Shown piece after piece: positions 2,698 through 64,000 of a stretch of 64,000 nucleotides of DNA (position 1 is its first letter; the number at the start of each line of letters is the position of its first letter). Under the pieces are notes generated by a model. That model saw only the letters and a list, made by a program, of their open reading frames with translations, was not told where the DNA came from and searched no databases. The DNA is from Klebsormidium nitens (Eukaryota > Plantae > Klebsormidiophyceae), in NCBI GenBank assembly GCA_000708835.1, contig DF237326.1, positions 27,119 to 91,118 on the forward strand, read 5' to 3'. Position numbers and translations under genes: made by a program.

Positions 2698-4099
2698 CTT
2701 GTTGACAATCAAAGCAAGGACGTTTTGAGGACGAACGCCATCGTTGAAGAAGCTGGGTAGCAATGAAGTAAATTACTCCGGCCAGACACTGCAATTTGCG
2801 GATTGTAAACACTGTATATTGGCCCAGCTGCTAAGAACTAGGTTGACGATAAATTGCTTGGGCAAAATTGTTGCTTACAAAGATTCAGTGCGTGAGCGAA
2901 TCAGCGGCGGGGATGGTACTTGGTCACGATTCACACGTGTTTACTTCAGCCAATCAATCTTCTGTACAGACGATTCTGATGCTTCTAGCCATTCCCTAAA
3001 GACTGAAGTCAACCATCATGTCTGGCACGCAAAGGGCTTATGTGTTCTTCCTTATGGATCCACACATAATTGAATGTATAGTCGCAAGACAAGGAGCTGG
3101 AGCAAGCTACGTAAGTAGGCAGGCTGGCACGCCAATGATATGAATAATACACGTCATCCATTGCATATTGGGTTCGCTCTTTCACTACGACGCGGACGGT
3201 ACATGCATCTATTCCGAGCTAGCTCTCGTAAACATACGAAGGTCCACTATTGCATCACGGTGGGCCTGGCATTTGGTCGAATGTATTTGAAGCACTGCCG
3301 CCATGCCGTGTTGCCTCTGCAGTGTCCAAATATCAATGCGCGCCTATGCATTGCAATATACCGGATCAAGTTCAATGGCTGACTCGGGATTTTGATCGGA
3401 ACACGTATTGCAACAAGTGGCCCGCTGTACAGACATGCCGCGCGTCCAACACGGCGGCCGCGCCGTGTTTGATTTGAATGTACAGAAGCTTCGTATTATA
3501 GCCCGCACTGCAGGGAGCTAGCTCAGGTCTTCTTGATTTTCAAAAGAGAGACCAGCATGCATGATTTCCCCAACTCAATTCCAATCGATTTCTGCGTGTG
3601 TGTGTCTATTGATCACAATTGGCAGCAATTGTGACTAGTCTCACGCGCTGAATAGAACTCTCTGTCCGATTGCAGGATCACATCGTTACAATTTGTCCGA
3701 GTCACTCTAGGTTTCACGGACCGGATCAGATTTCCCACACTTTCAGTTCGACATGTTTCTTGATTTCCCGTTGGTTTAAGTCTTGTGATGGCGTTCCTCA
3801 ATACTTCTCATTGTGGCAAAAACAGGCTCTACAGATCGCAGCTGCAGTTGTAGGCAATTCCTTACCGTACTCTTTTGTCACGAACTAAAGACAGCTCTCT
3901 TCCATCTATGCCTTTGGCAAAGCATATCATGTGTTTCAATCTACAATCTTGGTACAGGATGCTAAAGTACAGTATACTTGCAATACTCAAAGCTTTATCA
4001 GTACAACGTCGTCGGCCATGATACACCTCGTTCACAGATCACCTAAAAGCGTTTCACATTCTCCACACCACACCTCAAAGCGTTACACTTCCGAACTCG

Positions 4100-7000: not shown

Positions 7001-10000
7001 TAGAAAGAAAGCCTCAGGATACATCTCTGCGAAGTTGGCCTGGCCTGAAAACAAGTACGGAGACCTGATGAAAATGCATCAGCACAAGAAATGAATCTCT
7101 GTTTCACTCCTTCACTTCCTCCTATCATGTTGTTTCAAATAAAACACGCCGAACCGAGCTCGGTTGTTCGTTCCAAGCCGTCAGCGCCGAGCCCCGGCCT
7201 ATGCTGCAAGATACCTAACAATCATCACAACATTGGGTGCGAGTCCAAAGGCGAAGCATGGCTGCCGTTGCGCGTGGCGGCGTCACCTGGGCGGTGTTGA
7301 AGCGCACAGTGGTGCAGTCGGGCAGGACGGAGACGGACCAGGGCGGCAGCACGTACGGCCGGCCGCGGAACGTGGCCAGGAACGGCAGCGACTCGTCCCA
7401 GTTGGACAGGAACGCCGCGCACGGGCCACTGCCGTTGCTGGCGCCGAGGGAGGTAAACAGGTGAGCCTGAAAGAAAATTGCCATTCACTCGAACGTTTTA
7501 AAAAGCGCACAATGTCTGACTTACAGGCTGAATGAAAAGAGCGGACAAAGTTGACAGAGATGAGATGTGTGGACAGAATTTCGAAATGAACGATAGTTGA
7601 GAGATGCGGAACGCCGACTTACGTTTCTTTCGTAGCGCGAGCCAGGGAATGTGAAGCCTCCTAGCTAAGCGCTTGAGAAAGTGTCTCGAGAACATCGCTT
7701 ATGATTCAAGGGTGCATCGGACGAGATGCCGCGGGCGGGCAGTCACCTCTTGCTTGGGTCCCAGCTGCTGTACGAGCGGCTCGTCCACTGCGAGTAGGGC
7801 ACCCTCGCAAGCGCGGATGGCCGAGTGCAGCGCCGCCAGGTGGCTGTACTTGGGCTCGCGGATGAGGCCTGAATCAAAGGGGAAGTCTGAATTGGTATAC
7901 CCCTTTCATGATTCTTTGTGTTTAGACCCGAGTCGAGGGTCAAAACAATGCATGATATCCTAGCCAAAGTCAATTTCAGGACTCGACGATCACAAGGTGA
8001 AAAAGTGGTACAAGCAGTTGAAACAGTCAGGCTGTCACAAAACGAGGGACACTCTTTCTTTCGAGAAGTCTCCCCCAGCTAAAATTGACAACGGACAGCG
8101 GCGGTCTCTTGGCCACCTCTTCTCAAGCAGATGCGCAAGGCATACTCGAGATGCCGAGACATGCTCACCATATTCGTCGAGGGGCGCATCGTAGTCGTAC
8201 GATGTCGTAAGGAAAGGCCCGCCTGTTGTGCGCCCGAAGCTCGTGCCTCCGTGGTACTGCAGCAAAGCAGGCACAAGGAGGCGTCAAAGGAGGCGTCTAG
8301 AACCCATTGAATGCACCAGCTCAGAACCAAATTGAATTCTGGGTTCGCAGAGCCTGCTTGTCGCGACTTTTGAACGGACCATCGGGGCAGGCTGTCTCCT
8401 CGGACTCATTGCACCAGCTTTACGAGGTAATACAGCAGACCGGGCGGCTGGATTCTGCTGGGCCGCACCATGTAGTAGCTCATGAGCGCTCCCCCCTTTG
8501 CGTAAAAGCGGGCGACGGCAAACGCGATGTCCTCCGCAGCGCGCCTCGGCATTGGGTACAACCAGCCGCCAAACCTGTGCCAGGTGAAAAAGCTGTCAGC
8601 GGCGAATTCAGCCGCTTCGGCTTGATTCTGAGAGCACGGGACGCTCAGCAGCCGTCGAAGCTGCTGCTCTACGAGACCCACAGGCAGAGCGGAAAGACGC
8701 TTGGAAAAGCAGGGCTGTCGGCGATGCACACCCCAGGTGACAGCGTCCGACTCACGTGCACAGTCAACGCAAGAGTACAATCCACCGGGACGACAGCATC
8801 ACATGCACCCCCAATGCTGCGCATTGGTTCAGGAGCGGATGGTGCTTACCAGCCGTCCCAGTTTTCAGTCCACATCTTGGGCATGGGCCACCGGTGGGGT
8901 TGGAAGTTATCGCAGTAGAAGCCATTGCACGTGTTGACCTGGGGCGAAAGAGGAGCGGAGTGAGCCTCGGCAGAGCCGACAGATTTTCCTAGTTAGCGGA
9001 CGAGGCAGGGCCGAAGGAAGCCCGTGCTCCCGAGAGTTTCAATAACCGTTTCTTCACTTACTGAGGCTGCTTTAGAGTTCTCCAGTGTCAAAATCTGAAC
9101 GACGGCTAACTTCACAGCTTCTAACTTTACTCTGGTGCACAATTCCAATGTCACCATTCCAGAGTCTTGCACAGAATGCTCATTGCAACAAGATCAGACT
9201 CTCGAGAACGGTTTCGGGGACCTACAATGAAGCCCGGGGCGTCTGGTTGCTGGCACATGATCCAGGGCACCCCTGCGTCCAGGGACTTGGCCATGTCGGC
9301 AGCCCAGTAGGCATAACGCTTCCCAGCTTCGCCATACGCGGCTTGGACGCTGCCGTACTCGTTCTCGATCTGCGAGAGGTCGAAGATGCTTCGTACTTCA
9401 GTATGAAAGATTCACAGCAAAATATGGGCACACGAATGTCCAATGTATGTTGCAAAAGCGAGATTGTTCTTGGTTCATTCTGGATAAATTCTTGGTGGGC
9501 TCTCCAACAACATGATTCCTTGGTTGCTACCATTTATGTAGCTTCTCGGTGGGCTCTCCAACAACATGATTCCTGGGTTGCTACTTTTTATACAAACATA
9601 AGAATCTGCCCTTAGCACTCGCCACAAGCGTGATGCTTGCCAGGATCCTTGCGCTTTTATGGTGTATCCGTTCATGTGTTACATCCCAGCCCCTCCACGC
9701 CAAACACAATCCATAGAGAATGTTACATGACTTCTCGACGAAGGTGAGAAATCGCTTCGATGCAGCAGCTTGGGTGATGCCCTTCTAAGAGAAGAGTGCT
9801 CATGGCAGATGCTCACCTGCGCCAGGATGATGGGGCCGCCCTGCCAGCTGAACAGCTGGTGCTCCTTCATCATGGCGACAATCTTGCGGGTGAAAACCTC
9901 CATCTTCGCCTGCAGTGCACAAGCTTCGACTGTTGCAATACGCGATCCACGGCACAGAAAGGATTCGTTTTCCCACTCTTGAACTGACAAAAGTTTTATT

Positions 10001-18200: not shown

Positions 18201-19013
18201 CTGAGTGCTCTCATAGTTCCGGCTTGCCTCCTGTGCCGCTTGTCGGCACCGTGGCCTTTGCCTCTGTTTCCTGTGCCGGCCTCCAGCACGTCAGAAGGAA
18301 GTGTTCCGTATATCTGTCCGGGGGGCGTTGCTCTTCGGTTCCGCCGTCACTGGGGTTGACGCGCGTGCGTGCGGTGTGCAGGGGCTGAAGCCGGAGGACG
18401 AGGTGCGGCTGCTGCAGCTGCGGGCGCAGGTGCTGCGCGTGTGGGACCTGCTGCGGAACGACAAGGGCTTCGACCCGGCGTCGTTGCAGCCCATCCTGCA
18501 GGTAACGCCCCGGGAGCGGGACAACCGGCTGGCCCCCACTTGCCGGTCACGCGGCATGCCAGGGGCCATTGCAGGAGGCTGGACTGCAAGCGTTGGCTAG
18601 TCTGCAGGCGCAAGAGCTAGCACGCCGTGTCACTGGCATCGTGCCACGGTTGTGTATCAGCGACGTTGCTTGGGATGTCACATCCAGCCGCACTCTTGCC
18701 ATGTTAACACGCCGACCAAAGTGTTGCCAACCGGTTCTTCCTGCTCCCTTTGGTCCGAGGAGCAGGCTTCTGATTCTGGTCCGTCGGGTAGTCGTGAACG
18801 CGGTGCTGATCCTGGTTACCCGCTGCTTCCCGCCCTGCCAGAGCTGCCCGTATTTGAGAGCATCTCAGGAGCATCGGATGGCCATTGCAGGTACTTCAGC
18901 GGCCAGAGGCACAGGTACTCAGCATCAACGTGGCCTCGGGGGTGTTCCAGCGATTAGCGGCTCGCTTCTTGCAGCAGCTGCTGAGACCAGCACCTGCGAC
19001 AGTACGGACTTGA
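12232..19013 (+). CDS. ABC1K3: Plastid ABC1/UbiB atypical kinase, ABC1K3-type, 15 exons
   Basis: Exons: 12232-12573 (transit-peptide-like), 12907-13080, 13409-13567, 13793-13864, 14163-14288, 14664-14873, 15265-15369, 15766-15898, 16108-16237, 16552-16739, 16976-17162, 17522-17675, 17925-18038, 18382-18501, 18891-19013. Motifs: [111 protein letters not shown]. The C-terminal QRLAARFLQQLL resembles plant ABC1K3 as I recall it. Confidence 0.94.
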
Positions 19014-21144
19014 TTGTACTGTCGTGCCAATCGACCAACCCGGCAAGCAGAGTTGTAGATATTGTCTGCGAGTCGAACATTTCTATTTGCCATGTTGCAT
19101 TCGGTCCCGGATGAGTCTAAAACGCACGCGTTGACCTTCAAGTATTAGACAGCGACGTTGGGGCATTATTGGTAGGTATTCCTGTTGCTTGTCAAGGCAC
19201 TGAGGACCACTTGGATCTGATCATGCATGTTCACAATTGCTGGATATCATTATCGATGTCTTTGCACTGTTGAGCCGCTTGCACGGCCAGGCCCATTGGC
19301 CCGGCACACGTGAACAGACCCGCGTGGGCCTAGCTGGCAATATATACGTAATATCTAGATCTTAGCTTGAGCTAGTACGTCCGTAAGATCTCAATATCAT
19401 AGCTAAGAAAGGCTCACTCAGCTATAGGCCGAATATCGCATGCAAGCTTCACAAGCTGAAGCTCCAAGAACTCTAATGTCCCATCAGTGCGGCACTCCCA
19501 TGCAAGAGCAAGATCGATGGCCAACATGACCTAGATCTGAAGCTTTGCAATTGTTATACCATGACCGCAGCCTTAAGCATGCATGCGCCGGAGCCGGCAT
19601 GGCCTGTCGGTGATTAAGTTGATCATCTTCGCACGCCAATTCAAGTCTTACCAATGCACATAAATATCTTGTCGATCTCTGACATATCTAGCTTGCACTG
19701 GCACCATGGCGTGATATCGATCATGCATTAATAAGCAAACACAAATATGCACGGATTGTAGGGTTTGGCAGTGAATGAGGTCCCGATCCTTGGTTGCGAC
19801 GTAAAGGCGGAACGCGTGCAAAAGCCGCCGCGCAATCCTCAATCCTCAGGTCAGATTCTTGTAAGTTAGCCTTCAATATGCAAGATGTCACAGTCAGTGT
19901 GGATCAGGCGGATATGACGTGCATGCATCATAGAGTATTTAAAGCGAACGCGCCGCTCCGCCGCACATTAAGAAAGGTCGGAACCTCAATTATGCATACA
20001 TTGCAAGCTGATCGTTGGCATGGCCGGCCCAGTGGAGTTCTTCAAGACGTCCGCATTGTATCTGCCGCGGAACTCAGTATGCAGCCTGCATGGTATTGCC
20101 CCGGTATTGCATGCAATTAACCGTTTCATGCCTCCGGCCGCCCGCATGAGTACGTATTTAATGCAATATAAGCGGCCTGCACAATGGTGGAATCTAGGTA
20201 GTGATTCGTGCAATTGGATCGTCAACACCTGTTGAATAATGTGACATGATACATCATGATTCAGGTTTGTATGATTGCAGACTGTCAGCCTATATACTGA
20301 GTTCGTTGCGGGGTGTGCCGGCCGCGGTGTGCCTCAGAGCGACCTTAAAGAGGGCGTCAGATATCAAAGCGCACTAGTGGCATCTGAACCCTGACTCAAA
20401 ATCATCTAAGTTATGAAGCACGGAAGACGGAACAAGTATCTGACTTGTTCTTCAGATAGAATCGTTCTTGCTATCTTGTGGACCGCAAGTGGCGAGGATG
20501 CTTCTGGCTCTGCCATTCGTATCATCGGACGGACTACATCGCACCTTGAAATGTGGCCCGAGCGACCAAATGCCCCATTTTCGGGGTACATGGTCGCCGA
20601 GGCATTGCGGGTCACAGGACGCCCTGGGCCCTGTCTAAGCGTTCATATATTAAGAGAATTTGAACGGCGAACTGAATGACTGAAGCGATATTTCCATGTT
20701 TTACTATCATCACTGATACCGTCAGGCCACAGTATATTCAGCCAGTCAACTTTGCTATCATTGAAAACGGTATCAAACTTTGTGGCAGACTAGTAGGATA
20801 CAAGCTCCCGAGACCCTTTGACTTTGTCCCAGTTACATTGATAACTCCCGCTGACAGTCTACAGTGCCAATGATATCAGTGGAGCTTATATCAGCTGATT
20901 GCACTATCCATCATAAATCTTGGCACTTTTGTCTTCATGGATACATGACATACCGCATGCCTGTGTTTCTGACCAAACGTGTTGCCTGTGTTTTACGTTC
21001 ATTTTGATAACATCACCTGAAGCTCCCGGTACAGCATAGATGGCGCCTGGCCGGCGTTAGAAAAGTCAAGCCGGTTATATGCGGTTAGTCACATGGCTCG
21101 AGTTACCCTGAGTTCGCAACTAGCACGCATATAACAGTTCTGCC

Positions 21145-21901
21145 NNNNNNNNNNNNNNNNNNNNNNNNNNNNNNNNNNNNNNNNNNNNNNNNNNNNNNNN
21201 NNNNNNNNNNNNNNNNNNNNNNNNNNNNNNNNNNNNNNNNNNNNNNNNNNNNNNNNNNNNNNNNNNNNNNNNNNNNNNNNNNNNNNNNNNNNNNNNNNNN
21301 NNNNNNNNNNNNNNNNNNNNNNNNNNNNNNNNNNNNNNNNNNNNNNNNNNNNNNNNNNNNNNNNNNNNNNNNNNNNNNNNNNNNNNNNNNNNNNNNNNNN
21401 NNNNNNNNNNNNNNNNNNNNNNNNNNNNNNNNNNNNNNNNNNNNNNNNNNNNNNNNNNNNNNNNNNNNNNNNNNNNNNNNNNNNNNNNNNNNNNNNNNNN
21501 NNNNNNNNNNNNNNNNNNNNNNNNNNNNNNNNNNNNNNNNNNNNNNNNNNNNNNNNNNNNNNNNNNNNNNNNNNNNNNNNNNNNNNNNNNNNNNNNNNNN
21601 NNNNNNNNNNNNNNNNNNNNNNNNNNNNNNNNNNNNNNNNNNNNNNNNNNNNNNNNNNNNNNNNNNNNNNNNNNNNNNNNNNNNNNNNNNNNNNNNNNNN
21701 NNNNNNNNNNNNNNNNNNNNNNNNNNNNNNNNNNNNNNNNNNNNNNNNNNNNNNNNNNNNNNNNNNNNNNNNNNNNNNNNNNNNNNNNNNNNNNNNNNNN
21801 NNNNNNNNNNNNNNNNNNNNNNNNNNNNNNNNNNNNNNNNNNNNNNNNNNNNNNNNNNNNNNNNNNNNNNNNNNNNNNNNNNNNNNNNNNNNNNNNNNNN
21901 N
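21145..21901. other. Assembly gap (N run)
   Basis: 757 N directly visible. Confidence 1.
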
Positions 21902-28596: not shown

Positions 28597-30509
28597 CGCG
28601 CGCCGCGCAGGCCACCACGGCACACGGGCGGAGCACAGGGATGAACACGCTGAGTGTTTGTGGCGTCTGCTTGGCCGCTCCATAACTTATGGCTCATATA
28701 GTTACCTATCTGCGTGTTGTGTAGTCCCCAGCTGGTTAAGTTATTAATTTTCTATGAAAAGATGCGTGTTTGCGGCGGGTACTGCAAGCCCTTGATGATG
28801 ACGTCGGTACGGGGTTGTGCCAATCGACTCAGAATCGGCGACGAGACTCCACCGAGATTCAGCGGCAGACTTTATGATGCTGCTTTAAATAGACTCTCGT
28901 GCATCTAGTACGGATGTTTTTGCTAGCCGGCAAATTTGGTTTAGCCAGTTTTGAAGCAAGTCGAAGTCTTTTACGAATGCTCGTAGCGGGCCGTGACAGT
29001 GCATTTTAGCATCGGACTCGTCTCCTCATTATGATTTGCGTTGAAGCTGCTTCAATCTACAAGATTTTTGTTACAAGAACAGCTTTGGTTATGCCCAACT
29101 CTCAAGGATTGTTTGATTAGCCGGCTGCCCAGGTTCGGCGATCTGCTCCCCAGTTGCTGCATATCCACCCAAGAGTCTCTTGTGAGGAGGCAGTCGAGAA
29201 GTTGGGCACGGCCGCTCGACGACGATCGGATCGATCAAGTCGGCTTAGTCGGTCCTGACGGGTGATCTTGGAATAAAAGAACATGTCACGTATGCGCAGC
29301 GTTGTAAAATATGTTGCCAGCTTTGGGTGGATCGGACTCCAGCTCCTCAACTCACGTTAACAACGGAGTCATACAAACTCAATCTCCTATCCAACCCAAC
29401 TTGCTCCGCTGTATCGTTTTGATTCGATTGATCAATCTCTGAGTTAATTGGCTACAAAAAAGCACTGGGCGGCTAGCAGGCTGACCTCACGATTATACTG
29501 TACGGCGGCTGCTTCTAAGTTGAGAAGCCGACGGCACGTCTTTATCTGGCTCTGTATCATGTTGCATGTGGCACGTACTCTATAATGAATCAAAAGAGAC
29601 CGTCGGAACGGTTGTCTTATATAATTAGCTCTAGTGGCAACTATACTATAAGTCACCTGTATCTGGAGCCGATCATGCAAATTTGAAACTTCGTGATAAT
29701 GCCATATATGCGGGCCTCGGTGATTCGTGTGGTCTTGGATCATTTGCGCACAATTAGTTTTTCAGTGCAACGCATGCGCATGGGCCGCGGACACTGACAA
29801 TTATATCTTAACTGCGTTCTGAATGTTTGATCGAGTGACTAATCGCATGCATGCACGTGACGCACTTAAGGAATAGATGTTACCAGATCGTCTCATGCGA
29901 CTCATTTCGAACTGTTTTGCTAGACCCTCGTCTTAGACGCTGGCCCCGCGCCACGGCCCGGCCAGTCACTGGTAGTTGGGCCCGTGCGAGCACCAACCCA
30001 TGCAGTATCTTACATGCGTCACTGTAAACGATCCATTGCTAAAAGTGGTTGTAGCGCACCAGGCTCGCCCAGGCCGCTGCCGGAATGATCAGGAAACTGA
30101 TTGCATTGAAGTCGAGAAGGACTTTTGAGTATCGGCCGCCGCGACATGTTACCTGAGCTGGATCAGAGCTTTCCGTCCGGGTTGACTTTGATCAGTGTCA
30201 CGTATAGCGGTATATAGTGGTATCCCTGACCACACAACAACTCAGATAAAGTGTAAGAGAGTACATGTAAAAGTCGGACAGTGCTCAGGTCGCGACAGAC
30301 GGTTGAGTCCACATGATGCAGAAAATTTCTGCCAATGTACCTTCAATCGCCGCCAACTCACCAAATCTTGGAAATGTGAATCTTTTGGTAATGTGAACAC
30401 GTGAATAGAAATTTGACCCCCGAGTCTTGTCGCGGAGGCAGGCAACGCGAGCAACGCAAGTTCCTGAGAGCTTATTCGAGTCAGGCCGCTACCAAGACTG
30501 GGCCGGCCG

Positions 30510-38035: not shown

Positions 38036-39532
38036 GAGTTTTTGGGGGAAGTTGCCGCGTTTTCGAGAACCCGTCCAAATCGATAGTGATGGTTGAAGAT
38101 TATGGAAAGCACTGTCAGTCTCATAAATTGAATCTTTCAAAAGCGTTGATCATCGGATCAAGACACTCCGACCTTTGAATGTATCCATGATCGTACCGCC
38201 TTTCAATGCATGGAGTCAAGCATGTATGGTATGGCCGGTATGTTATGTACAATCATGCGGTTTTTTAGTATGGTATATCTAAAAGAATTACACATTTGGG
38301 TCCTACATTGGGTATACTACCGTACTGCTATTTGATTTCGGCACCTTCGACGCCGAAAAACTAATTATGAAACTTTCTGTCCTTTGGTAAGTTACCTGCT
38401 AAATTAAGTAACCATAATTAGTATCGAACCAATATCGCCTGAAAACATTTTCTGAAAATCTCGGCATGGGCCGCAAAGAAGTATTTAAATTTATTGCCGG
38501 AAATAAATATAGCAGTGCGGTAATAGGTTGCATCATCATTATCATGTATGTAGTCTGCATATATATCGGAGTTCTGTTTGATCGGATATATATATGTAGG
38601 CTAGCTCTTCCTCTCTTATATCGAATCTGCAACAGGAAGACGACCGGCCACGTTATAGGAAGCCTAGGCTTGAGCTAGGGCTATATAGTTGAAACCTTAC
38701 AATCTAGTTGTTGCAATTACAACCCAGCTTAGCGCGCTCGCTATGGTAGATTGCTTACGAGACGCCGGTAGTTGAGGAAGACATAGTGATAACCCCCGGC
38801 CCGCACACACATTCATATATTATGTATGCAATGAGAAGCCTATGGCCCAGGTGGCCGCTACGGCGAGTAAAAGAGAACATCATGTGCATCAACCGCTGGC
38901 AGAACGGTGCAAGTACATAGCGGCTTAGAATTGTAACAGCCATGTCGACCCACACGTGAGGCCCATGGTTAAATGCCACTTGTGGGACCGCCCGGCCGGG
39001 CCGGGCGGCCACTGTCTCTTGTACCAATGTGTACGGCGCGGGCCATGGGCTTAATTGCAATCAAGAGCTCGATCGGGCTCAATTGGGCGGCCGGCCGGCC
39101 GGCCCCACCCTACTAGAGTCGGAATATAGCTACATACTTCGTCAGATGGTTAAGCTTCTCGTTTGTTAACGCCTTCAGCCGCAGAATAGCTAGGCTAGAG
39201 CCATGGAGCAGTGACAGTCTCTGGAAGACCCGGGACAATCTATTGATTCTGACTCCGACTCGGTTCAGGCGCTTCACCTGTCGAATTTCTTCACATTATT
39301 GTACATATAAAGCTCGACTCCGATGACCTTTTTGATTCTCTACAAATTAACTGGAGCAACGGAACCCAGTGTCCGTTCCTCAAATTGGAACGGGACAAAT
39401 CTCTTTTAAACGCCATGTAAAGTACAAACTGATACAAGCAACTTGCTCGCTGACCACATACATCACGTCAAAGGACTGCTTCAAGATGATTGCGTGCTGT
39501 TAATCCGTATGAGGATGTGGCCCGCCTTCTCC

Positions 39533-43089: not shown

Positions 43090-43200
43090 ACGGGTGGGGT
43101 TAGTTTGGGGGTTAGGGTGGGTTTGGGTGCGGAGCGGGTGTTTTTGAGGGTTAGGTTTTTAGTGTTAGGCTGGGAGCTTACTATACCTAGAGCTTAGGGT
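43090..43200. repeat. Degenerate telomere-like G-rich tract (GGGTTAG / TTTTAG variants)
   Basis: ggggttagtttgggggttagggtgggtttggg...gagggttaggtttttagtgttagg; no perfect long array. Confidence 0.5.
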
Positions 43201-43371
43201 AAGGTCATTTTGTAGTGGNNNNNNNNNNNNNNNNNNNNATTTCCGAGCCTGCGGCTCGACCATGGCGGAAACTCCGAGCCCCCCCCCCCTCCTCCTGCCC
43301 TCAGGATTCCAAACCCCCAACCCCCACCCTCTGAACTAAACATAGGGGGTCAGCTTCAACATGACCTTACC
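43197..43371. mobile_element. Probable PIF/Harbinger-like MITE (diverged relative of 44070-44601), interrupted by a gap
   Basis: Left end gggtaaggtcattttgtagtgg; right end cagcttcaacatgaccttacc. Both resemble the TIR of the 44070 element. Flanks are TTA and TAA, so the TSD is not a clean direct repeat. True length is unknown because of the N run. Confidence 0.6.
43219..43238. other. Assembly gap (20 N)
   Basis: N run visible. Confidence 1.
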
Positions 43372-43375
43372 TAAT

Positions 43376-43787
43376 GCCCGGTTCACATGCGTCTTCGTGA
43401 ACTTCTGAAACCAGCCAAAACTGTCCAGTGGCGGTGTTTTCAATGAAAACCACGGGCGCGAAAACACTGTCGATTTTGCCGGTCGCGGAGCCGACCAGCG
43501 GGTGTTTGGGGCCACATGGGGTTCATATGGGGCCACGGAAACCACCGGTTTTGGTCGTCGGTCGCACTTCAAATCGAAAACCGCGACCAAAACTCGACCA
43601 AAACCACGAATACGCAGGGTCGAAACTCGGTTGGCAAAACAGCGAGTTTTCGCCGGTTTTGGCCAACCGGCAGAAACTAGACCACGGTTTTCGAAAACAG
43701 CGTTCACATACGTCCCGCAGGTTTCGGACCTGCCACGTAGGACGAAACCAGCCTAACCACGCCAAATTCGACGCATGTGAACCGGCC
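43376..43787. mobile_element. MITE-like element (about 412 bp) with 16-18-bp terminal inverted repeats
   Basis: Left gcccggttcacatgcgtc (43376-43393); right gacgcatgtgaaccggcc (43770-43787). The inner 16 bp are perfectly inverted. The interior is rich in CCAAAAC/GGTTTT motifs. TSD unclear (aat / tat). Confidence 0.75.
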
Positions 43788-44069
43788 TATAAATTGAAGA
43801 GACATCCTCCTCGCCGCCGTCGGCGTTGGCACCTGGGCGTCGGACTGAGTTCAGCTCTGCTCGGCCGGGGTGTTACGGTGTGATTCTCGGAAGTCACTGC
43901 GCACCGTCCGCACTGGTTAGGACGGCTGGGCCTTGGTGCGGCCGCCCTTCGGACGGTCAAAGGCCCGCGGCCGCCCGTCCGCAACTGCATGGTTGATTTT
44001 GAGACTTGAAACTTTGTGACTCAAACCGGGAGCCGGAGGGACCGTTGAGACTGTTGACACTTAGGCTAA

Positions 44070-44601
44070 GGGGAAGGTCACTTTGAAGTGGTACCCCCCC
44101 CTAATTATTTGTAGAGGGTTTTTGTCGGGAGCGCTGGGTCCCTCCCCCATACCCACGGCACAAGTGAAATCGGAGCGTCGGGCCCCCCTCCCATATTGTT
44201 TTTCCCGGATCAAGGCCCTGGGTACCCCCCCTATATCTTTATTTGGGAGAAGCCAAAATTGGATAGAGAAGTCGCTTATGCGGGCATATGAAACCGGTTT
44301 CTTTGCACTAATCTGCGTTTTAGATTTTCGTATGGGGCATTTTGCCTTTAGGTTTTGACGAATATAAGTTCATATACGCCATTTGGAGCCTGATTTAGCC
44401 TCAGAATCACATGAAAATGGGGACCGGGCTCCATGCTCCCCCCCCTTGAGCTACCTAAAAGGCTAAGCTCGTTAGGTGCCCCCCCATCGTGAGCAAAGTG
44501 TGGGTGTGTCCCCCCCCCATAGGGACCCCGAGCCGCGCTCGGAGCCCTAGGCTCCCCCCCCTCACAAAAAGGGGGGGTACCACTTCAAAATGACCTTCCC
44601 C
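44070..44601. mobile_element. PIF/Harbinger (Tourist-like) MITE, 532 bp, TAA target-site duplication
   Basis: About 30-bp TIRs: ggggaaggtcactttgaagtggtacccccc and ggggggtaccacttcaaaatgaccttcccc, one mismatch. TAA flanks both sides (44067-44069 and 44602-44604). No coding capacity. A TAA/TTA TSD with G-rich TIR start is characteristic of PIF/Harbinger. Confidence 0.9.
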
Positions 44602-44875
44602 TAAGTAACGCAAGATCGAGGCACAAGTTGACGAATAAATGGATGTGGACGGGTTTCAAATTTGCGTCATTCCTTGTGCGACACCCATTCTTGCCCGGTT
44701 TAATGCCGCTTTATCCGACTTTTTGGGACTGGCCTGATACATCATAAGTACATAAAGTGCTCGGGTAACATCAAACCGCACCAAAACCCTAAGGACTTAG
44801 GTAATGGCTTAATCATTTAGCTAGGAACCCGATTTTAGGTAGAAAAGGAGTCACAGGAAGTTGCGTACGGTATTA

Positions 44876-45483
44876 CAGTAGGTAACCTAAAATACCATGT
44901 GACCTAACCCTAAGGTCACTGACAGTGCCCGGTTGCTTTCTGGGCAAGTGCCAAGTGCCAAGGATGCCAGGGTGTCGCCCGAGAAATGACGGTTCGTACC
45001 GTCCACTGCTATCCTGCGCCCTGTGGTGTTTACCAATTCTCGTGGCACACATTGAGGCGTCTTACATGGAGGGTGAGTTGCCGACGGTAAATGGTAACTT
45101 ACCGGGCACTGTCGCAACTTTGCAAGTACCGCCCAGACTTACCGTGGGCTCGCCGCAATCCGCGATTTACATGGTCCGAGGGTAAGTCGATGGTAAGTCC
45201 CGATCGAGGCCAAATTCGCACTCATTTCGGACTTACCACGACTTACCACGAGTTACCTCATCGATTTCGATGAGTTAAATTGGGGCCTACTTTACCGTCG
45301 GTAGACTCGACTTACCACGGTAAGTCGCTACCATGTAAAAGGCAAGTCGTGGTAAGTCCGAAATTCGACTTTACGTCGGAACTTTAACCTCCATGTAAAA
45401 CGCCTCATTATCTGGCATCAGTGATCACTGGTGTCAGTGTCACTCTGGAGTGGGTACCTACCTACCTAGTACGGTACCTACCG
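44876..45483. mobile_element. TA-flanked non-autonomous element (Tc1/mariner-like), 608 bp, short TIR C(A/G)GTAGGTA
   Basis: TA|CAGTAGGTAACCT...GTACGGTACCTACCG|TA. Both end types recur, in opposite orientation, at 55867-56424. The interior carries many GACTTACC/GGTAAGTC motifs. Confidence 0.65.
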
Positions 45484-46123
45484 TAGGAAGGACCGTGACC
45501 GTTGGTTGGGCGCGCTGTCGCGACGGTCGAGTCTACCTAGTACTGTCTTCCCCTTCTCTTTCCATCCTCCTCGTACTCGTAGGAACTTGGAAGTCATGAA
45601 TCATGCCTACCATGGTATGTCTGGTACCATGCATTATTGGCACACCTACGGTTCAACTTCAAATGCAAGGCCAAGATCTCTTCGAGTCCGGCATCAACGT
45701 GCTAATAGTATTATACATGTACCGTATCTCTCCATGGGCACAAGTAGACACAATCTAGGAACAGAAGCAATGCCATGTTGCTGACCCTTGACGATTCCAT
45801 GTAAGCTTACCTTCATCGTTCAACGCTACCATAGTGTATCCCTTCCCCTCAAACAAGGATCTCAACCAGATTTTCTCCTCTGTACGACGGTCGGCATGAT
45901 CTGTCTCTCCCCTATCCTTGGTGTTCCAACATTCTGTTGTTCACCTTGTTCCTTTTCTCAAATTCACTCGCGAAATTCTTCGTCTTTTGTTCTGGCTCTC
46001 GTTCGTGCAGTGGAGCGCCCATGCACAACTTTGAGGTCTAGATGACGCCAAGTCGAGTGTACGCTTCCTGATTGCCTGCTGCATGCAAGTAGACAAGAAG
46101 GGCATATCACAACGGGCTAGAAG

Positions 46124-49783: not shown

Positions 49784-52094
49784 CACAGTTGGGGACCTGT
49801 TGCAACATTGGTGTTTGAGGGAGTCTGCAAGCTAATTCGTAAACTAATCTAGTCGTCCAAGTCAAATGCTGATACACACACCACCGTGGCAAAAGCAGCG
49901 CACCATTGCTGTAAAGGGTCGATCAGGAGTCAACATTGGGGCCGGACCGTTTATCTGAGTCAAAAGGTAAGGCATTGGTTGCGTTTGTTTTCGCGCCTCA
50001 TGTCAATCTGCACGTTCAAGCGGACTCGATTGCAATGTTATCATACATGCATGCTCGTTGATGACATGTGCGCTTACTAATGATTCCTAAAGTTTCGTGA
50101 CATCGGCGTCGCCGAGTTGCCGGACAAATGATATACGAATATTCACTACAATGCAAATTCCGACATGATGTGCGCATTGATTCAGCAGTTTCGAAATCAT
50201 AACGTGGTCATGACTTATGCATGACTCACCAACATGCAGGCCGGATCACACACATACATACGGATTTAACGAACTCTGACGGAGCATTTTCGGAACTGTC
50301 GGATCAAACACATGCTAAGATTCTTACGACCGGCGGGGGCAGGCTAGACCCACGCAGACACCGGCCAGGCTAAACTAACAAACACACCATGACATGCAAT
50401 CGAGTGACTAAGTTATGACTCGAGAGAAATTCATTGAATGAATGGATTGAACGAAACCAATGCTAGCCTGTTCTTGCGGAATCATGTTGATCGAATCATA
50501 ATATGTATTTCGTATGTTTCGATATAGAGCAAGCGCGGCCACACTTATCGGATTTTTCGCGGCGATCTAGCCGCTCGAGCAAGGTTAACCAGCACCGAAT
50601 TGAGTTTGGCAAGGCGTAAACGTACCATGCCGGTCTAGACTCTCAGTAGCTCTATATGGGATCAAACAGACCGTATTTTTTATACCATCCTAGATGGTCA
50701 GTGAATTTAGACTTCATGGAATTTAGGATCACTTAACGACAAGTCTCGCGCAAGGGGGGTTTCCGTGTGAGGTGAGAGCCTAGGCGAGAGTGGACTCGAG
50801 ATACTCTTGGAGCTGTATCTTCGATCCCACTGAGTCCGAGATCAAGAGGACAGAGGGGAGGCTGCATGAGGGTGAAGGACTCGGTCGCGGCAGATGATTC
50901 AATCACCGTCAACTCCGGGGGAACCCCGTTTGTTGGTGGATGTCCGGTCCGACACGGAGGTTAGGCAGATCCCGGGCCTCTGAGTCCGGTCTGCGGCGGA
51001 GTCGGCTGTGGACTCAGCGGGGGGCATGCTGCACTCGTTGCTTCGAGGCCGCTAAGCCTCGAACTTAACTTAAGCGGCCACTGAGACGTACAACGGTCGC
51101 GAATCATGCGCCACAAAATACCCTCGTACGGTAAGTTCGATTCTGTAGCAGTAGAGAATTCGGGCATGCATGCTGCAGGGAGGCCGGGCCCGATTGACAT
51201 GCTTCTGCGGTCATGATGCCTCTTCCCGCTGTGCGCGATCCGCTCTGCGAGTTGTTTGGCTGAGATGAGGGCGGCGTCGATCTCGGCTCAAATTAGGCCC
51301 TAATATCGATATAGCTCATGTAGATCGGTGCATGTGCATAGCGCATTGAACATGGCTCGTGCTACTGAGCTGCTCATGCAGAGCATTTTAGGTGCGCGAG
51401 GGGCCTCTGGCCTCTGGCAATTGCCAAGATTTGTTGGTCCAAGGGTCGTGGAGATGTCATGTCACGATGATCGCTGAGGAGTGCAATATTTGAGGTGCCA
51501 TGCCACTCCGAGTCCGACCACACATGACAATCTGAGAATTAATTGGCTCGGCCAACCGTTGCCGCCATGTTTTATTTGTATCATCATTGTCATTGTCATT
51601 CAACTATATCTCAGACAGATATCAAAGAGCTTGACGGACAAAGATGGATACCAGAATCACCTGCCTTGTGGAGTCACGGAGAGTCTGTGCCGCGCCTGTG
51701 GATATATGTATGTCGACAGTATGCCGCAATCCGTTCTTGACTAAGAATAAGAATCATACTACAAGTATCCGATCGAACTACATGAATGGTTCACGGTTGC
51801 ATTCATACTGTGCTTCCAAGTTGGCCCACCGAGGGTGGTAAAAAATTACAAGATTATTCATCCGGTCTCAGCCTTTTGCCTATCAACCCCAACGATGCCT
51901 TCTCAAGCGTACCAAAATATTTAACACTACTGTATATGGTACAAAACGTCGTATGTACAGGTATGTATCTTGTTCCCTGCTTCCAACAATGTGGTTGCAT
52001 ACTCAAAAGCAAAAGCCAAAGAATTGCCTAGTTATTCTCTTTAGAGTTCAAACTTCTCGCAAACTCTACCGCCAAATGCTAGCCTTGGCGCAGA

Positions 52095-55552: not shown

Positions 55553-55866
55553 GGCTTCTGATGTTGAAGGCCCTGCTGTTATTTGTGCACCGATACATGA
55601 ACTCTGTCTGCAACTGGTTGTTTGCAACCCTACACACTTTCGAAACCGGCTCCAAAATCCTCCTCCAACTCAATGCGGGGCAAGAAGAGGTGCTCTGATC
55701 TCAGGTTGAACAGCTGGCAGGAAGCGCTGATCACCATGCAGTCGCCTTTGGAAATCAGCAAGATGCGACTTGAGTCTTGGTTTGCCAGCAAGAAGAAACT
55801 TGAATGAATCGAACTTCGAAGCAAAAGCGCGGCCGCAACACCTGCGTTTAGGTAGGTAGGCAGGTA

Positions 55867-56424
55867 CGGTAGGTACCGTACCTCCATGGTACCTCTGGGG
55901 AATCCGGACCTGTCGTGCCCACACCTGGTGAGCCCCATGTGCGGATCTGAACCTTCTATTGAAGCAGAATCTCAGACATCGACGGCGTGCAGGGTGTTCT
56001 CAATCCGGGTACCATATAATTTGAACGTGAGTCTGTGTCGACCTTTGCGCGCACGGTACGGAACCTTTGCTGATTCTGATGCAGGCTCGTGCTAATCAGG
56101 GTTTCCCACGGACTTTTGTCCCGGCCGGCCAGCTGCCGGCGCCCCCCCGGTTCAGCCGGCTCGGTAGTCGGTCCTTGGCTGTACCGGCCAGCTGAGACTA
56201 GAGAGTGCCCGCAGTTTCTGCCGGCTAGCAGCCGGCTGGGTGCCTTCGGCACCGGCCGGAGTCCCATCTCGGCCGGCCAGGTCTAGGTTCTCTTGCCGGC
56301 TGTGGGAAACCCTGGTGCTAATAATCTTACTTGAAGTTTGAACATGACACACATGAAGGAGGGAGCTAGAGAACGGAGACCCGGATCCTCGTTGTTCTCT
56401 GAGGACCAGTGAGGTTACCTACCG
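55867..56424. mobile_element. TA-flanked non-autonomous element (same end family as 44876-45483), host of a nested hAT MITE
   Basis: TA|CGGTAGGTA...TACCTACCG|TA: 9-bp perfect TIR with imperfect extension (acctc-ggt-cctc). It sits in the MAF1/PAT1 head-to-head interval. Confidence 0.65.
56097..56314. mobile_element. hAT-superfamily MITE, 218 bp, 13-bp perfect TIR, 8-bp TSD
   Basis: TIR CAGGGTTTCCCAC / GTGGGAAACCCTG. The TSD GTGCTAAT appears at 56089-56096 and 56315-56322. The interior has about a dozen CCGG sites. An 8-bp TSD with a CAG-starting TIR is characteristic of hAT. Confidence 0.93.
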
Positions 56425-56603: not shown

Positions 56604-59600
56604 ATGGATCGTCGTGAGGGGACCATGGGACGCACTCGATCGCGAGACAATGAGACATTCGGAGGCATCGAGGCAGAAGGTAGGCACTTGCACTGTGGTT
56701 TCTCTTTATGCAGAATTATGGACCTTGGCAGGCACTTCGAGGTGTGCTGCGAGGAATGTCTCGCTCATCACGTTTTCTTTTCTTGCTGCTATTAAAGCTT
56801 GCTTTAGACTTTCCAAGCAACGCTGTCATCTTAGGTTTTTGCTGTTGTTTTTTCAATGCATCCAGCTTCCAGGAGCAATCAACGCAGCTGGAGGGCGTGC
56901 ATTGGTCCTAGGGCTCTTTCACTGCTTGCATTTGTGCTTTGTTTAGGTCTTGTTCTGATTGCATTGCCACCACGACTTCAGGTAGGGGCGATTTGCACAA
57001 TCGCATTCATAATGGTTGGGAGTGGACAAGCATCCACTGGCACAAAAGCCTTGCTTACAACTTTGTATCTACGTTTCTGATGCTCACCTTACTGGATTCA
57101 CCTATGCTGCAAGTGGTGCATCGATCGTAATAATGAACATGCACAGTTGCGTTTGCATGGTTCACCCCAGGGTTGCTAGAAGTGACCTTGTTGTAGAGAA
57201 TGCTTTTGCCGGCCTTTCTTGCACAGAGGGCTGCTGTTCTGTGGATCTTTTTATTGAAGATGGGATTGCGCTGAACATGCTGTTTGTTGATGCAGCGGCT
57301 GTGTGGCACCAGGCCGACCACCCATCTGCAGCCAATTTCGAGGAGGAGCGTTTGAAACGACATAATGGTGGAGAGCAGAACCTGAAGGCACCCGCAGCTT
57401 TTGTTGAATTTGACCCCGGCAATGGTTCTTTAAATAAAGATGCGGGCGAGGATTTCAATGCGGGCGCTTATGCCTTTTTTGGGGACCCAAGCGGCAGTGG
57501 TCTGGAGCTGGAGTTGGGTGGACTTGAGGAGGATGCGGGGGGTGCACTTGCCCCAGATGACGAGGGCGGGGTGAAAGGGCTGGAAGGGGAGGAAGAGGTG
57601 GACATTGAGGAGCTGCGAGATGACGACAGCAAGCAGCAGGTGGCACAGGCATTTGCGAAGGTCAGTGCTGCCACTTGAAACTCAAACCCTAGCATCGGTC
57701 ATGCTGCAGGTTTACAATGCTTGATTTGTTCGGAAAGTGCTTTCCTTGGCATGCAAAGTAAGAATCTGGCACTTTCTTGACCAGTGTGAGCATGGGTCAC
57801 CTCTCCTTGTGGAAAGGCTCAGCATGATGTTCATCGCAACACTCTATCGCAAATGTGCTCCAGCATGCGCACCCAGCTACTGAGTTTCTTCCCTGGACTC
57901 TCATACTATAGTTGCGCGGGAACATGCCGTAATATTTTCCGGCATGTGCGCTTCTTGAAGGATAAAATTCAGTATTTGTGTTAGCATGCTACAGTAACCT
58001 CGAAATACCTTTTGGCACCTTCCGCCTGCCAAATTTGAGATTGCATCTTCTAACGCGCCTTGGTTTTCCGACAGTTGACCACTTCCGATGGCCCGCCTGC
58101 GCCTGCGCCCTGGCAACTGGTGGACACTAGCTCAAGCACTGCCCCTGCTGCCACCCCTGCTTCTGCACAACCCGCATGGTGGCCACGAGCAGAGGGCCCT
58201 GCAGGCGGCCCTCAGGAGAGCTGGGAGTGGCACGTGCGCCAGTTGCAGGCGCAGCAGGCCCAGCAGCGGCAGCTGCAGCAGGGGCAAGGCCTGCCAGCAG
58301 GCGCCCTGTCTGTGGAGCAGCTGGAGGCCAGCCTCAGGCAGGGATCTGCGCATGAGCGCACCCAAGGTTACCCGGCCGCCTCTGGGGCTCCCCCCAACCG
58401 AGGCCCGCCAGGCTTCTCAGCATCCCGGCCTGCCGCTTTCCCTGCTGGAGGACCCCCGCTCCCGCACTTTGATCAGGGGCGTCCCCAGTTTCGTGGCCCC
58501 CCTATTGGGCCTGTCTATGGCGGTTCCTGGGCACAGCCTTCCCCTGGTCATCTAGGAGAACGCACACACTCCCCGCAACCTTTACCACCCGCGTGGGGGG
58601 ACGCCCTCAGCTCCCAGGCTCTACTCCATTTGCATGCCCTCCAACAGCAGCAGCAGCAGCAGCAGGCCTCCGTTGCGAGCCTTCCTCCTCCATATGCACA
58701 TGAGCAGGGCCCCTCGGCCGGGCCCTACTATGGGGGTGCAGCCCAGCTGCGGCCACAGCGAGCAGGGGGCGAGGGGCAGCCCCACTACGGCAGCCATCAG
58801 TCCAGCTCTGCAGAGAGGCGGCCTGGCCCCATGCCCCCGCAGGGGCAGGGCTATGGCGCGCTGCAGCAGCAGGGGTATCAAGGTCGGCCCAACTACAGGT
58901 GAGCCCCAAGTGGACGGGGAGGGGGATCAAGGGGGCGTGCATATATGGGCATGTGGGCATGTGGGCATGGGGGCTGCGCTGGACTGTTCGAAAGAGTTGC
59001 TTGCTTTGCGATGCAGATGTGTNNNNNNNNNNNNNNNNNNNNNNNNNNNNNNNNNNNNNNNNNNNNNNNNNNNNNNNNNNNNNNNNNNNNNNNNNNNNNN
59101 NNNNNNNNNNNNNNNNNNNNNNNNNNNNNNNNNNNNNNNNNNNNNNNNNNNNNNNNNNNNNNNNNNNNNNNNNNNNNNNNNNNNNNNNNNNNNNNNNNNN
59201 NNNNNNNNNNNNNNNNNNNNNNNNNNNNNNNNNNNNNNNNNNNNNNNNNNNNNNNNNNNNNNNNNNNNNNNNNNNNNNNNNNNNNNNNNNNNNNNNNNNN
59301 NNNNNNNNNNNNNNNNNNNNNNNNNNNNNNNNNNNNNNNNNNNNNNNNNNNNNNNNNNNNNNNNNNNNNNNNNNNNNNNNNNNNNNNNNNNNNNNNNNNN
59401 NNNNGACTGTTCGAAAGAGTTGCTTGCTTTGCGATGCAGATGTGTCGTTTGTCCCTCAGGAGTGCGGCCCTCGAATGGCATGGCAGGCCTTCTTGATGCA
59501 GCATTTTGTGTTGCATTGTCTTGTTGCTTGCCTGCTCGCGCTGGCCTGAGCATGCGCTGCGGTCGGACAGGTCCAAGTACGTGAGCCACGAGGAGGTGGA

Positions 59601-62283: not shown

Positions 62284-63870
62284 AACCGATTATGTCATCG
62301 AGAGCATTCAGTGGGGAATTGTGATGACATTCCTTTCAAAACCTGCTGGGAACGGTGAGAATAAAAGGTATTGTCAGATCGCGCTATTTGGAGTCTAGTG
62401 AGGGGACATTCGTACTATGCAGGTAGTCACAGCAGACGGCTTTGCGTTGGCTGTGACGGTTGAGTCTGTACAAAAGTTAGCGAGGGTTCACCTGCGGCCA
62501 TTGCAAAGATCAGATAGTAGTTAGTCCCTGTATGCTATGGCACAAGCTGAGCTCGTTTATCATAGGAATTGCTTTGAGATAGACATAGCTCTTTGTAGCT
62601 TGTTTGCAGCACTGATATAATACTTTTCTAGGACAACAAAGTTTGGGCCACCTTATAGCTGTAGGACAGGGAAGGGTGTGCACAATAAACGCATTGGGAG
62701 TTGGAAGCAGGACGAAGCTGGGACGGTGATCGGTTGGCACCCGCTAAGCTCTCGTGAGAAGTCAACTTGAAGTATAACTTCAGTCTGATCAAGAGCTATG
62801 CCATGTGCCATCCGTCAACTAACCAGGGATTTTCAAGGAAGAGTATTGTTCATTGCTTCATTGGCGGCTGCACGCTGGCGACTTTGTACTAAACATGCAA
62901 TTTGCAAATGTATTATAAGCATGCTGACAATTTAAGTAGTACTTTGTAAGAAGGCCTGGCACGCGCTTGTTCTTACCGAATATAGAATGCTAGGCTCAGG
63001 CTTTGAGCTAGTTACAAATGCAACTTATATGCATATCCATGACTTTGTACATGTGCGTCATGCAAGATTCGAATCCATGCCAGGTTTTTTGCATGGGATT
63101 TACATAATTAACAACGATAGCAATTGTGCCACTGGCATCATGGCATGCATATGGCCTGCAGCGGCGCGGCTGGCTTACATACTAGCTCAATTGAAACTAC
63201 GCGCGCACATCCGATCAATCATGCAACAATAATGATCGATCGATCAATAGCTCGAACATCGATGATCAGAATTTCGAACATGTCCTAAATGATATATAGC
63301 GCGCTCTATTATGGCCGCTCACATGCAATGCCAACTCGTATCCCCGCGGACTCGACCCACATGATATTACTAGCTATAATGACCGACGGCGATCGACTGC
63401 AGGGTGTCTGGCCGTGTCTAGCTTATATTCGATATTGAAGACTTGTCCCTATCGGTACGATGAGTCCACTTGAGTGATCAGATATAGACATGACATAAGA
63501 TCCGATCGAGTCGACGGCCCAGACTGTGCCGCGGGGCGAGCATGAAGAGGGATCGGACTCAGTCGCCTCAAATATGATCGTCGGATGTGATGCAGCGTCG
63601 TTAACCGTACCCGTCACTTCTCGGAAATCGGACGGTCTATTGACTCCAGCGGTACAATATCGGACGGCTGGATGGGACTACTAACAATTCGGAATATTAA
63701 CCGTATAAATTGCCCAATCCAGATTCCTCTCAAATAAGTTTCCTTTATTTTCTTTCTTCTTTTTCTTCTCTTTCAATTCTCGCTGAGAGTGGGACGGTGG
63801 ACCCCACCTGTGATATTTCGTAAGGTAGATTTAACACATGCGCGGTCCAAAATTCGCAAAATTCCCAAAA

Positions 63871-63887
63871 TTTAGGGTTTAGGGTTT
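63871..63887 (+). repeat. Two tandem TTTAGGG units (telo-box / interstitial telomeric motif)
   Basis: tttagggtttagggttt is directly visible. Confidence 0.6.
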
Positions 63888-64000
63888 CCGTAAATTTCGC
63901 GAATGACGTCATCTTTGCGTTTTCTAGTGGAAAAGAGAGGGTTTTGAGGTATTGAGCCAATCTATGTGATTGATTTGGGTCATATTTTCCATGCGCTTTC

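Follow-up and report, generated by a model that had tools for sequence, protein, structure and literature searches.

The 64-kb stretch of Klebsormidium nitens DNA analyzed here (the window, meaning the whole stretch) carries, behind the 3' ends of its genes, spacers rich in 4-bp palindromes. The palindrome excess behind gene ends is real. The reading that fits it best, which we hold tentatively and at short of even confidence, is a footprint of break repair or template switching that acts on any sequence and builds up in the unconstrained DNA that follows poly(A) sites. The feature looks more like a DNA-repair scar than a coded stop signal. Palindrome-rich tail spacers seem to be undescribed, as we found no description of them in the literature, including the genome paper.

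Such tracts were originally predicted from the DNA behind the ABC1K3 gene, with the claim that every interval following a gene 3' end carries one. Ten intergenic intervals lie in the window. Enrichment was measured as the number of 4-bp palindromes observed against 300 dinucleotide-preserving shuffles over the intervals as first delimited, and the borders of the tracts were set partly by eye. The tracts and two related segments, none of them assigned to a strand, are as follows, with observed versus shuffled counts in brackets unless another expectation is given.

3000–3900: the weakest tract, in a tail-to-head interval after the 3' end of the minus-strand GH35-like gene (3.1–3.5 kb: 43 versus 34.3, ratio 1.25, z 1.7; 3001–3600: 57 versus 44 expected; peak of the sliding map at 3.3–3.6 kb)
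19200–20400: the focal tract, directly behind the ABC1K3 mRNA 3' end (19.2–21.144 kb: 194 versus 140.8, z 5.2; 19200–20500: 153 versus 99 under an order-2 Markov model)
20501–21144: the distal part of the originally predicted focal interval, not enriched, stopping at a run of N (41 versus 42–43 expected)
29500–30200: tract between the amidase gene (plus) and a converging unnamed gene (minus) (29.5–30.2 kb: 74 versus 49.3, z 4.0)
38400–39300: tract between the Tyr/Trp-tRNA synthetase gene (plus) and the converging HVA22 gene (minus), with a (GGCC)n run at 39088–39104 (38.4–39.2 kb: 107 versus 66.4, z 5.7)
50000–51500: tract between the tetraspanin gene (plus) and the converging Maf1 gene (minus) (50.0–51.5 kb: 146 versus 102.2, z 5.1)
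55850–56330: the exception, a GC-rich cluster of palindromes (GGTACC, CCGGCC, GCCGGC, CAGCTG) in the divergent Maf1/PAT1-like spacer (z 3.4 for 55.6–56.6 kb)
62900–63550: the strongest tract, behind the PAT1-like gene (plus), holding the top bin of the window (62.9–63.5 kb: 93 versus 54.7, z 6.0)

All six intervals containing a gene tail carried a tract, as had been claimed, although the one at 3.1–3.5 kb did so only weakly; the other five had ratios of 1.38–1.70 and z-scores of 4.0–6.0, values reached by none of the 300 shuffles. Three of the six intervals are tail-to-head, and in these the tract occupied the tail side, so that no converging partner is needed. The six tracts pooled (5955 bp) held 663 zero-spacer palindromes with arms of at least 2, compared with 437 in the shuffles (z about 13). 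Across most of the window, the density of 4-bp palindromes was near 28 per 500 bp, and it rose to 44–82 at 3.0–3.5, 19.0–20.5, 29.5–30.0, 38.5–39.5, 50.0–51.5, 56.0–56.5, and 63.0–63.5 kb. When 125 bins of 500 bp were scanned without bias, eight of the nine top bins fell in tail tracts and the ninth in the divergent spacer at 56.0–56.5 kb. The dinucleotide shuffles, together with Markov models of orders 0–4, rule out chance or composition. The tracts are 0.65–1.5 kb long, reach the next functional element, and have a GC content of about 49%.

The position of the focal tract relative to an mRNA end could be read from RNA contigs assembled from four runs in four studies, which cannot pin the exact poly(A) site. 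These contigs describe a spliced, plus-strand ABC1K3 transcript, whose last part is the following feature.

18886–19286, plus strand: last exon of ABC1K3, stop codon (19112–19114), and short 3' untranslated region (UTR), defined by spliced GT..AG RNA contigs and by the end of the open reading frame (ORF) at 19114

In the four studies, the contigs ended at 19162, 19226, 19250, and 19286. No contig in any of the four runs lay on 19379–21144, except for a stray 43-nt piece (20345–20387) of a low-depth contig with unmatched flanks. Because the contigs end at 19.16–19.29 kb, the tract begins in the last roughly 90 nt of the ABC1K3 mRNA and runs on for more than 1 kb without stable RNA, and a 3'UTR or RNA-level element is ruled out on the same ground. 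The sliding map placed the focal enrichment at 19.1 to 20.2 kb. The roughly 2-kb extent first given to this tract therefore holds only in part: 19.2–20.4 kb is enriched, but 20501–21144 is flat (41 versus 42). The self-complementary words first quoted from this region are in place, namely a palindromic run (19338–19381), GCATGCATGC (19577), GATATCGATCATGCATT (about 19713), and ATCAGCTGAT (about 20890). A metagenome scan for the tail region of a relative yielded one distant, uninformative 1152-bp contig with 55% identity, carrying about 210 bp behind the stop. The octamer TCGGACGG, which sits in the unmatched flank of the stray RNA contig, occurs at 20525, 43949, 63628, and 63660, all four in non-palindromic intergenic DNA, and might represent either a motif of promoters or a fragment from a dispersed repeat.

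The enrichment was absent from transcribed and promoter-side DNA. RNA-defined introns and exons of ABC1K3 had ratios to shuffles of 1.04 and 1.05, respectively, the DNA upstream of the amidase gene had a ratio of 1.07, and promoter-side DNA overall ranged from 0.97 to 1.07. Within the last interval, the promoter-side remainder (63551–64000) was likewise flat, with a ratio of 1.05. Head-to-head intervals had been described as largely free of such tracts, and equal enrichment there and in introns had been named as an observation that would refute the proposal. The spacers at 11.7–12.2 kb (ratio 0.96) and 42.9–46.1 kb (1.05) were indeed flat, as were the introns, but the one at 33.4–34.5 kb was mildly raised (ratio 1.21, z 1.8) and the one at 55.6–56.6 kb clearly so (73 versus 51, ratio 1.43, z 3.4).

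The signal is specifically an inverted one. In the tracts, a dinucleotide stood beside its own reverse complement, in either order, at 1.68 times the expected frequency, compared with 0.94 times for direct doubling, which rules out patchy composition or dinucleotide usage. The two outer bases of a tetramer were complementary 1.53 times as often as expected around a self-complementary center and 1.03 times as often otherwise. Extension of a palindromic tetramer to a hexamer was only 1.10-fold over an order-4 model, and the unit is therefore the 4-bp palindrome. Zero-spacer palindromes with arms of at least 3 numbered 203 versus 112 in the pooled tracts; palindromes with one-base spacers were less raised than those with none, and the excess was gone at spacers of 3–6. 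No helical or nucleosomal periodicity of palindrome positions was found up to 60 bp. Base skews in the tracts were near zero, making them strand-symmetric.

The signal is also general with respect to sequence. Fifteen of the 16 palindromic tetramers exceeded the dinucleotide (order-1 Markov) expectation, with values ranging from 2.7 for GGCC to 0.83 for GCGC, and under an order-2 model the 16 shared one factor of 1.53 (heterogeneity p 0.46). Palindromes centered on ApT, GpC, CpG, and TpA were all raised. Self-complementary dinucleotides were themselves already raised in the tracts and homodinucleotides lowered. The tracts had been called TpA-rich, which is true only by comparison with the remainder of the window (0.88 versus 0.66 for TA odds). 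The two palindromes that can be made from one dinucleotide shared their enrichment (CATG 1.84 and TGCA 1.71, GATC 1.63 and TCGA 1.62, and likewise AGCT/CTAG, GGCC/CCGG, and others), and only 2 of 50,000 random pairings were equally tight. The non-palindromic rotations ATGC, GCAT, ATCG, CGAT, GCTA, and TAGC stayed at about 1.0-fold, whereas palindromic rotations were at 1.6–1.8-fold; GCCG and CGGC were the exceptions that departed from 1.0. Direct 4-mer repeats were raised at offsets 4 (2.65-fold), 5, 6, and 2, and these were mostly one palindrome doubled at a spacing of 4–6 bp, as in GCATGCATGC, GATCTGATC, CATGGCATG, and TCGAGTCGA. The tracts also contained small runs of (GCAT)n, (GGCC)n, and (GATC)n. 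As side observations, ATTGCAAT occurs in three separate tracts (3350, 39054, and 50029), and the 10-bp palindrome GAGCTAGCTC occurs twice in the weakest tract, at 3216 and 3515, 300 bp apart.

A blastn comparison within the 64-kb window found only self matches or very short ones, both among the tracts and between the tracts and the remaining DNA, which bears out the original observation that one tract cannot be aligned with another. No Rfam family matched at its gathering score anywhere in the window, and the tracts folded as single-stranded DNA no better than shuffles (z −0.6 and +0.2). The tracts thus lack hairpin or cruciform potential, and these results speak against decayed fold-back elements, hairpin terminators, and structured RNAs. 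Long-range inverted repeats were not found in the tracts, and the excess of inverted 4-mers disappeared beyond a spacer of about 4 bp. Tandem Repeats Finder reported only two small arrays in the tracts, and 107 of the 663 palindromes lay inside period-4 runs. The rotations of a repeat unit, which a microsatellite would raise equally, were unequal, and the mostly flat non-palindromic rotations rule out decayed tetranucleotide arrays. Marks of transposable, MITE (miniature inverted-repeat transposable element), or fold-back origin were likewise missing from the tracts, which had no alignable copies in the window, no terminal or long-range inverted repeats, and no stable fold-back. They did show what a P-nucleotide footprint would leave, zero-spacer palindromes of any sequence, strongest at zero spacer (z 13).

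Among the explanations first put forward, a mutational footprint fits these results best, the effect being sequence-general (15 of 16 tetramers), inverted only (1.68-fold versus 0.94-fold), and common to rotation pairs. We infer the repair mechanism and its link to termination as follows. The tracts would be non-transcribed spacer starting at a gene's poly(A) region, in which a sequence-general process sets a short stretch, usually two bases, beside its own reverse complement and so creates a 4-bp palindrome. The likeliest source would be repeated breakage followed by hairpin-type ("P-nucleotide"-like) or template-switch repair, with cycles of transposon insertion and excision as a variant. 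A break end would gain the reverse complement of its terminal bases, for which hairpin opening, turn-around or template-switch synthesis, and excision footprints are candidate routes. Enrichment common to both palindromes of one dinucleotide would be expected of a process that acts on break ends from either side, and not of selection for binding sites. Two causes might account for the placement: breaks may be commoner where RNA polymerase II terminates, owing to torsional stress, R-loops, and open chromatin, or scars may be tolerated only there in a compact genome.

Several points weigh against a repair footprint. Mutation was not seen directly, and the mechanism is read from equilibrium word statistics in a single 64-kb window. 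Hairpin-forming transposons of the hAT type leave 8-bp target duplications, which were not seen here; direct repeats at offsets 8–11 were at 1.2–1.4-fold, not a significant increase. To yield about 220 excess palindromes in 6 kb, fixed events would have to be very dense. A selected function would account equally well for the tight placement beside 3' ends, as it would for the spacers of 0.65–1.5 kb retained in a compact genome. Two divergent spacers are enriched too. Finally, ATGCATGC/GCATGCAT has 10 copies in the tracts and 1 in the other 57 kb, which hints at a motif-specific component.

We consider a functional origin rather doubtful. Under it, the tracts may represent a class of DNA, strand-symmetric and sequence-general, present at every RNA polymerase II termination zone of this streptophyte alga, acting either as a two-way terminator or boundary read by its dyad symmetry and not by a motif, or as a programmed break-and-repair zone that links termination with hairpin-type repair. 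The first form taken alone, a selected termination or boundary zone that stops or insulates transcription from either side, appears somewhat unlikely. With words that read alike on both strands, one such zone would cover read-through from upstream, a converging gene, or antisense transcription from the next promoter. It would suit the presence of a tract in six of six tail-containing intervals, on the tail side in the three tail-to-head ones, as well as the strand symmetry and the start at the mRNA end, and the tracts carry words of the GCATGC type at up to 64 times the density seen elsewhere. Bidirectional termination zones of yeast offer an analogue (bioRxiv 10.1101/2022.11.02.514956). However, the enrichment has no single motif and extends over 15 of 16 palindromic tetramers, including GGCC and CCGG; the tracts are 5–10 times longer than the yeast zones, lie beyond rather than inside the stable transcript, and lack hairpin potential. 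The enrichment shared by rotation pairs has no obvious reason under selection of sites, and a cluster also occurs in a divergent spacer.

Dense sites for dimeric DNA-binding proteins, forming a downstream regulatory or Polycomb-type module, are an improbable alternative. Presumed binders would be B3 proteins on CATGCATG "RY" words, bHLH proteins on CANNTG, HSF on GAAnnTTC, and TCP on GGNCC. The words CATGCATG, ATTGCAAT, GAAGCTTC, GAATATTC, and CAGCTG all occur in the tracts, and CATGCATG is found in five of the six and only once elsewhere. However, no enrichment is seen on the promoter side, the place to expect such sites, and the enrichment is general instead of tied to a few words. Still less probable are very old, decayed transposable or fold-back elements inserted in gene tails, an origin that had been among those first proposed. 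MITE-like inverted-repeat elements are present in the window, and a 13-bp inverted repeat encloses part of the cluster at 55.85–56.33 kb. Against this, the tracts have no alignable similarity to each other or to the rest of the window, no long-range inverted symmetry, and folding at the level of shuffles; their symmetry is limited to 4 bp, and the MITE-bearing spacer at 43.2–46.1 kb has a palindrome ratio of only 1.05. An array of symmetric modification sites (5-methylcytosine, N4-methylcytosine, or N6-methyladenine) marking termination regions, similar in concept to base J, is the least probable of all: word symmetry would permit maintenance methylation and tract CpG is not depleted (odds 1.03 versus 0.82 window-wide), but all four classes of central dinucleotide are raised, so that many different enzymes would be needed. 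The species is reported to have plant-like CG, CHG, and CHH methylation (PMC9861306). The results give no support to a motif code, and the effect is not carried by any one central dinucleotide such as ApT or CpG.

The gene map was drawn from models checked exon by exon. The window is eukaryotic DNA with GT..AG introns of 200–400 nt and exons of 100–190 nt; genes have a GC content of 55–65% and intergenic DNA of about 47–49%, and three assembly gaps are present (21145–21901, 43219–43238, and 59023–59404). Besides ABC1K3, the following genes were placed, those with a family name by Pfam matches on exon ORFs unless stated otherwise.

1–2.7 kb and 30.0–32.6 kb, minus strand: unnamed genes, placed by third-position GC content (GC3) and codon scores
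9.7–10.1 kb, minus strand: GH35-like gene
24.8 kb, plus strand: amidase gene
34.9–36.8 kb, plus strand: class I tRNA synthetase (W/Y; Tyr/Trp)
41.2–41.7 kb, minus strand: HVA22 gene
47.4–48.8 kb, plus strand: tetraspanin gene
53.1–53.5 kb, minus strand: Maf1 gene
56604–62000, plus strand: PAT1-like multi-exon gene, placed by an ATG (56604), a splice donor (AAG/GTCAGT, 57660), and an in-frame acceptor (58074)

The gene orientations assumed in the original prediction stand on Pfam matches, RNA contigs, and splice signals. Look-up of the exact products of two ORFs retrieved no official gene calls. The gene at 56.6–62 kb encodes DNETFGG in exon 1 and YAFFG in exon 2, followed by a Q/P-rich region; from these peptides we take it to resemble the mRNA-decay factor PAT1, which serves as a candidate label. 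Searches with its single exons matched nothing in Pfam, PDB, or Atlas look-ups. A codon-usage model placed a minus-strand gene at 57.0–58.9 kb, which, if real, would give the 55.6–56.6 kb spacer a gene tail; the splice signals and frame continuity of the plus-strand gene rule it out.

Several smaller elements lie outside the tail tracts. At 56089–56325, in the Maf1/PAT1-like bidirectional promoter, a perfect 13-bp inverted repeat, CAGGGTTTCCCAC (56097–56109) and GTGGGAAACCCTG (56302–56314), brackets about 190 bp that are rich in GCCGGC/CCGGCC and contain CCGGCCAGCTG twice; this unit could be a regulatory module or else a mobile element of small size. The divergent spacer at 43239–46100 contains several MITE-like inverted-repeat elements, with arms of 35 nt at 44066–44100 and 44571–44605 (94%), 44 nt at 45043 and 45374, 24 nt at 45224 and 45341, and 16 nt at 43378 and 43770, in addition to homopolymer runs of C or G. 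The N gap there is directly preceded by a partial copy of the 35-nt arm, at about 43190–43218. Taken as a class, promoter-side DNA has too many direct repeats of period 7 (50 versus 15), and a telomere-like TTTAGGG repeat of 2.4 units (telobox) lies on the promoter side at 63871–63887. The window contains three sites of TGACGTCA (17899, 31397, and 63904), where about 1 is expected, and the GH35-like gene region carries a 54-bp unit repeated 1.9 times with a 91% match (9489–9591).

If the tracts are a repair footprint, they would constitute a clean, strongly localized mutational signature that reveals where a compact genome of the plant lineage breaks and rejoins, and would mark the zone behind poly(A) sites as special. 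If they are functional, they would represent, in the lineage from which land plants arose, a terminator or boundary element recognized by symmetry rather than by sequence. In both cases, an index counting dinucleotides that directly precede their own reverse complements predicts gene 3' ends (eight of the nine best 500-bp bins in this window) and could aid the annotation of Klebsormidium and perhaps of other algae.

Among known systems, the closest functional analogue is the bidirectional termination zone of yeast, which occurs at convergent and tandem genes and is centered on the palindromic UAUAUA (bioRxiv 10.1101/2022.11.02.514956). Both the yeast zones and the tracts belong to compact genomes and lie at the 3' ends of genes arranged convergently and in tandem, and in the yeast zones a DNA-palindromic word serves both strands, as the tract words would. 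The yeast zones are about 120 bp long, lie inside the 3'UTR, and use one AT-rich motif, whereas the tracts measure 0.65–1.5 kb, lie beyond the stable transcript, have a GC content of about 49%, and raise nearly all 4-bp palindromes, and so differ in size, position, and the lack of a single motif. Cryptic simplicity or slippage shares with the tracts short direct repeats at offsets 2, 4, 5, and 6 and small tetranucleotide runs, but direct doubling at 0.94-fold, mostly flat non-palindromic rotations, and the 107 of 663 palindromes in period-4 runs set the tracts apart. Bacterial REP/BIME elements are copies of a family of roughly 35 bp that fold as hairpins. Like the tracts, they are palindromic and cluster behind the 3' ends of genes and between genes that converge; unlike them, the tracts do not align, do not fold, and lie in a eukaryote. 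Palindromes left by hairpin opening, or P-nucleotides, are found at V(D)J coding joints and in hAT-type excision footprints in plants. No break, transposon, or 8-bp target duplication was seen in the tracts, and the density that their palindromes would need is far above that of described footprints. However, P-nucleotides and the tract palindromes are alike in having no spacer, in measuring about 2–6 bp, and in a sequence set only by the bases adjacent to the break, and a P-nucleotide-like origin would explain both the generality of the enrichment and its sharing between rotation pairs.

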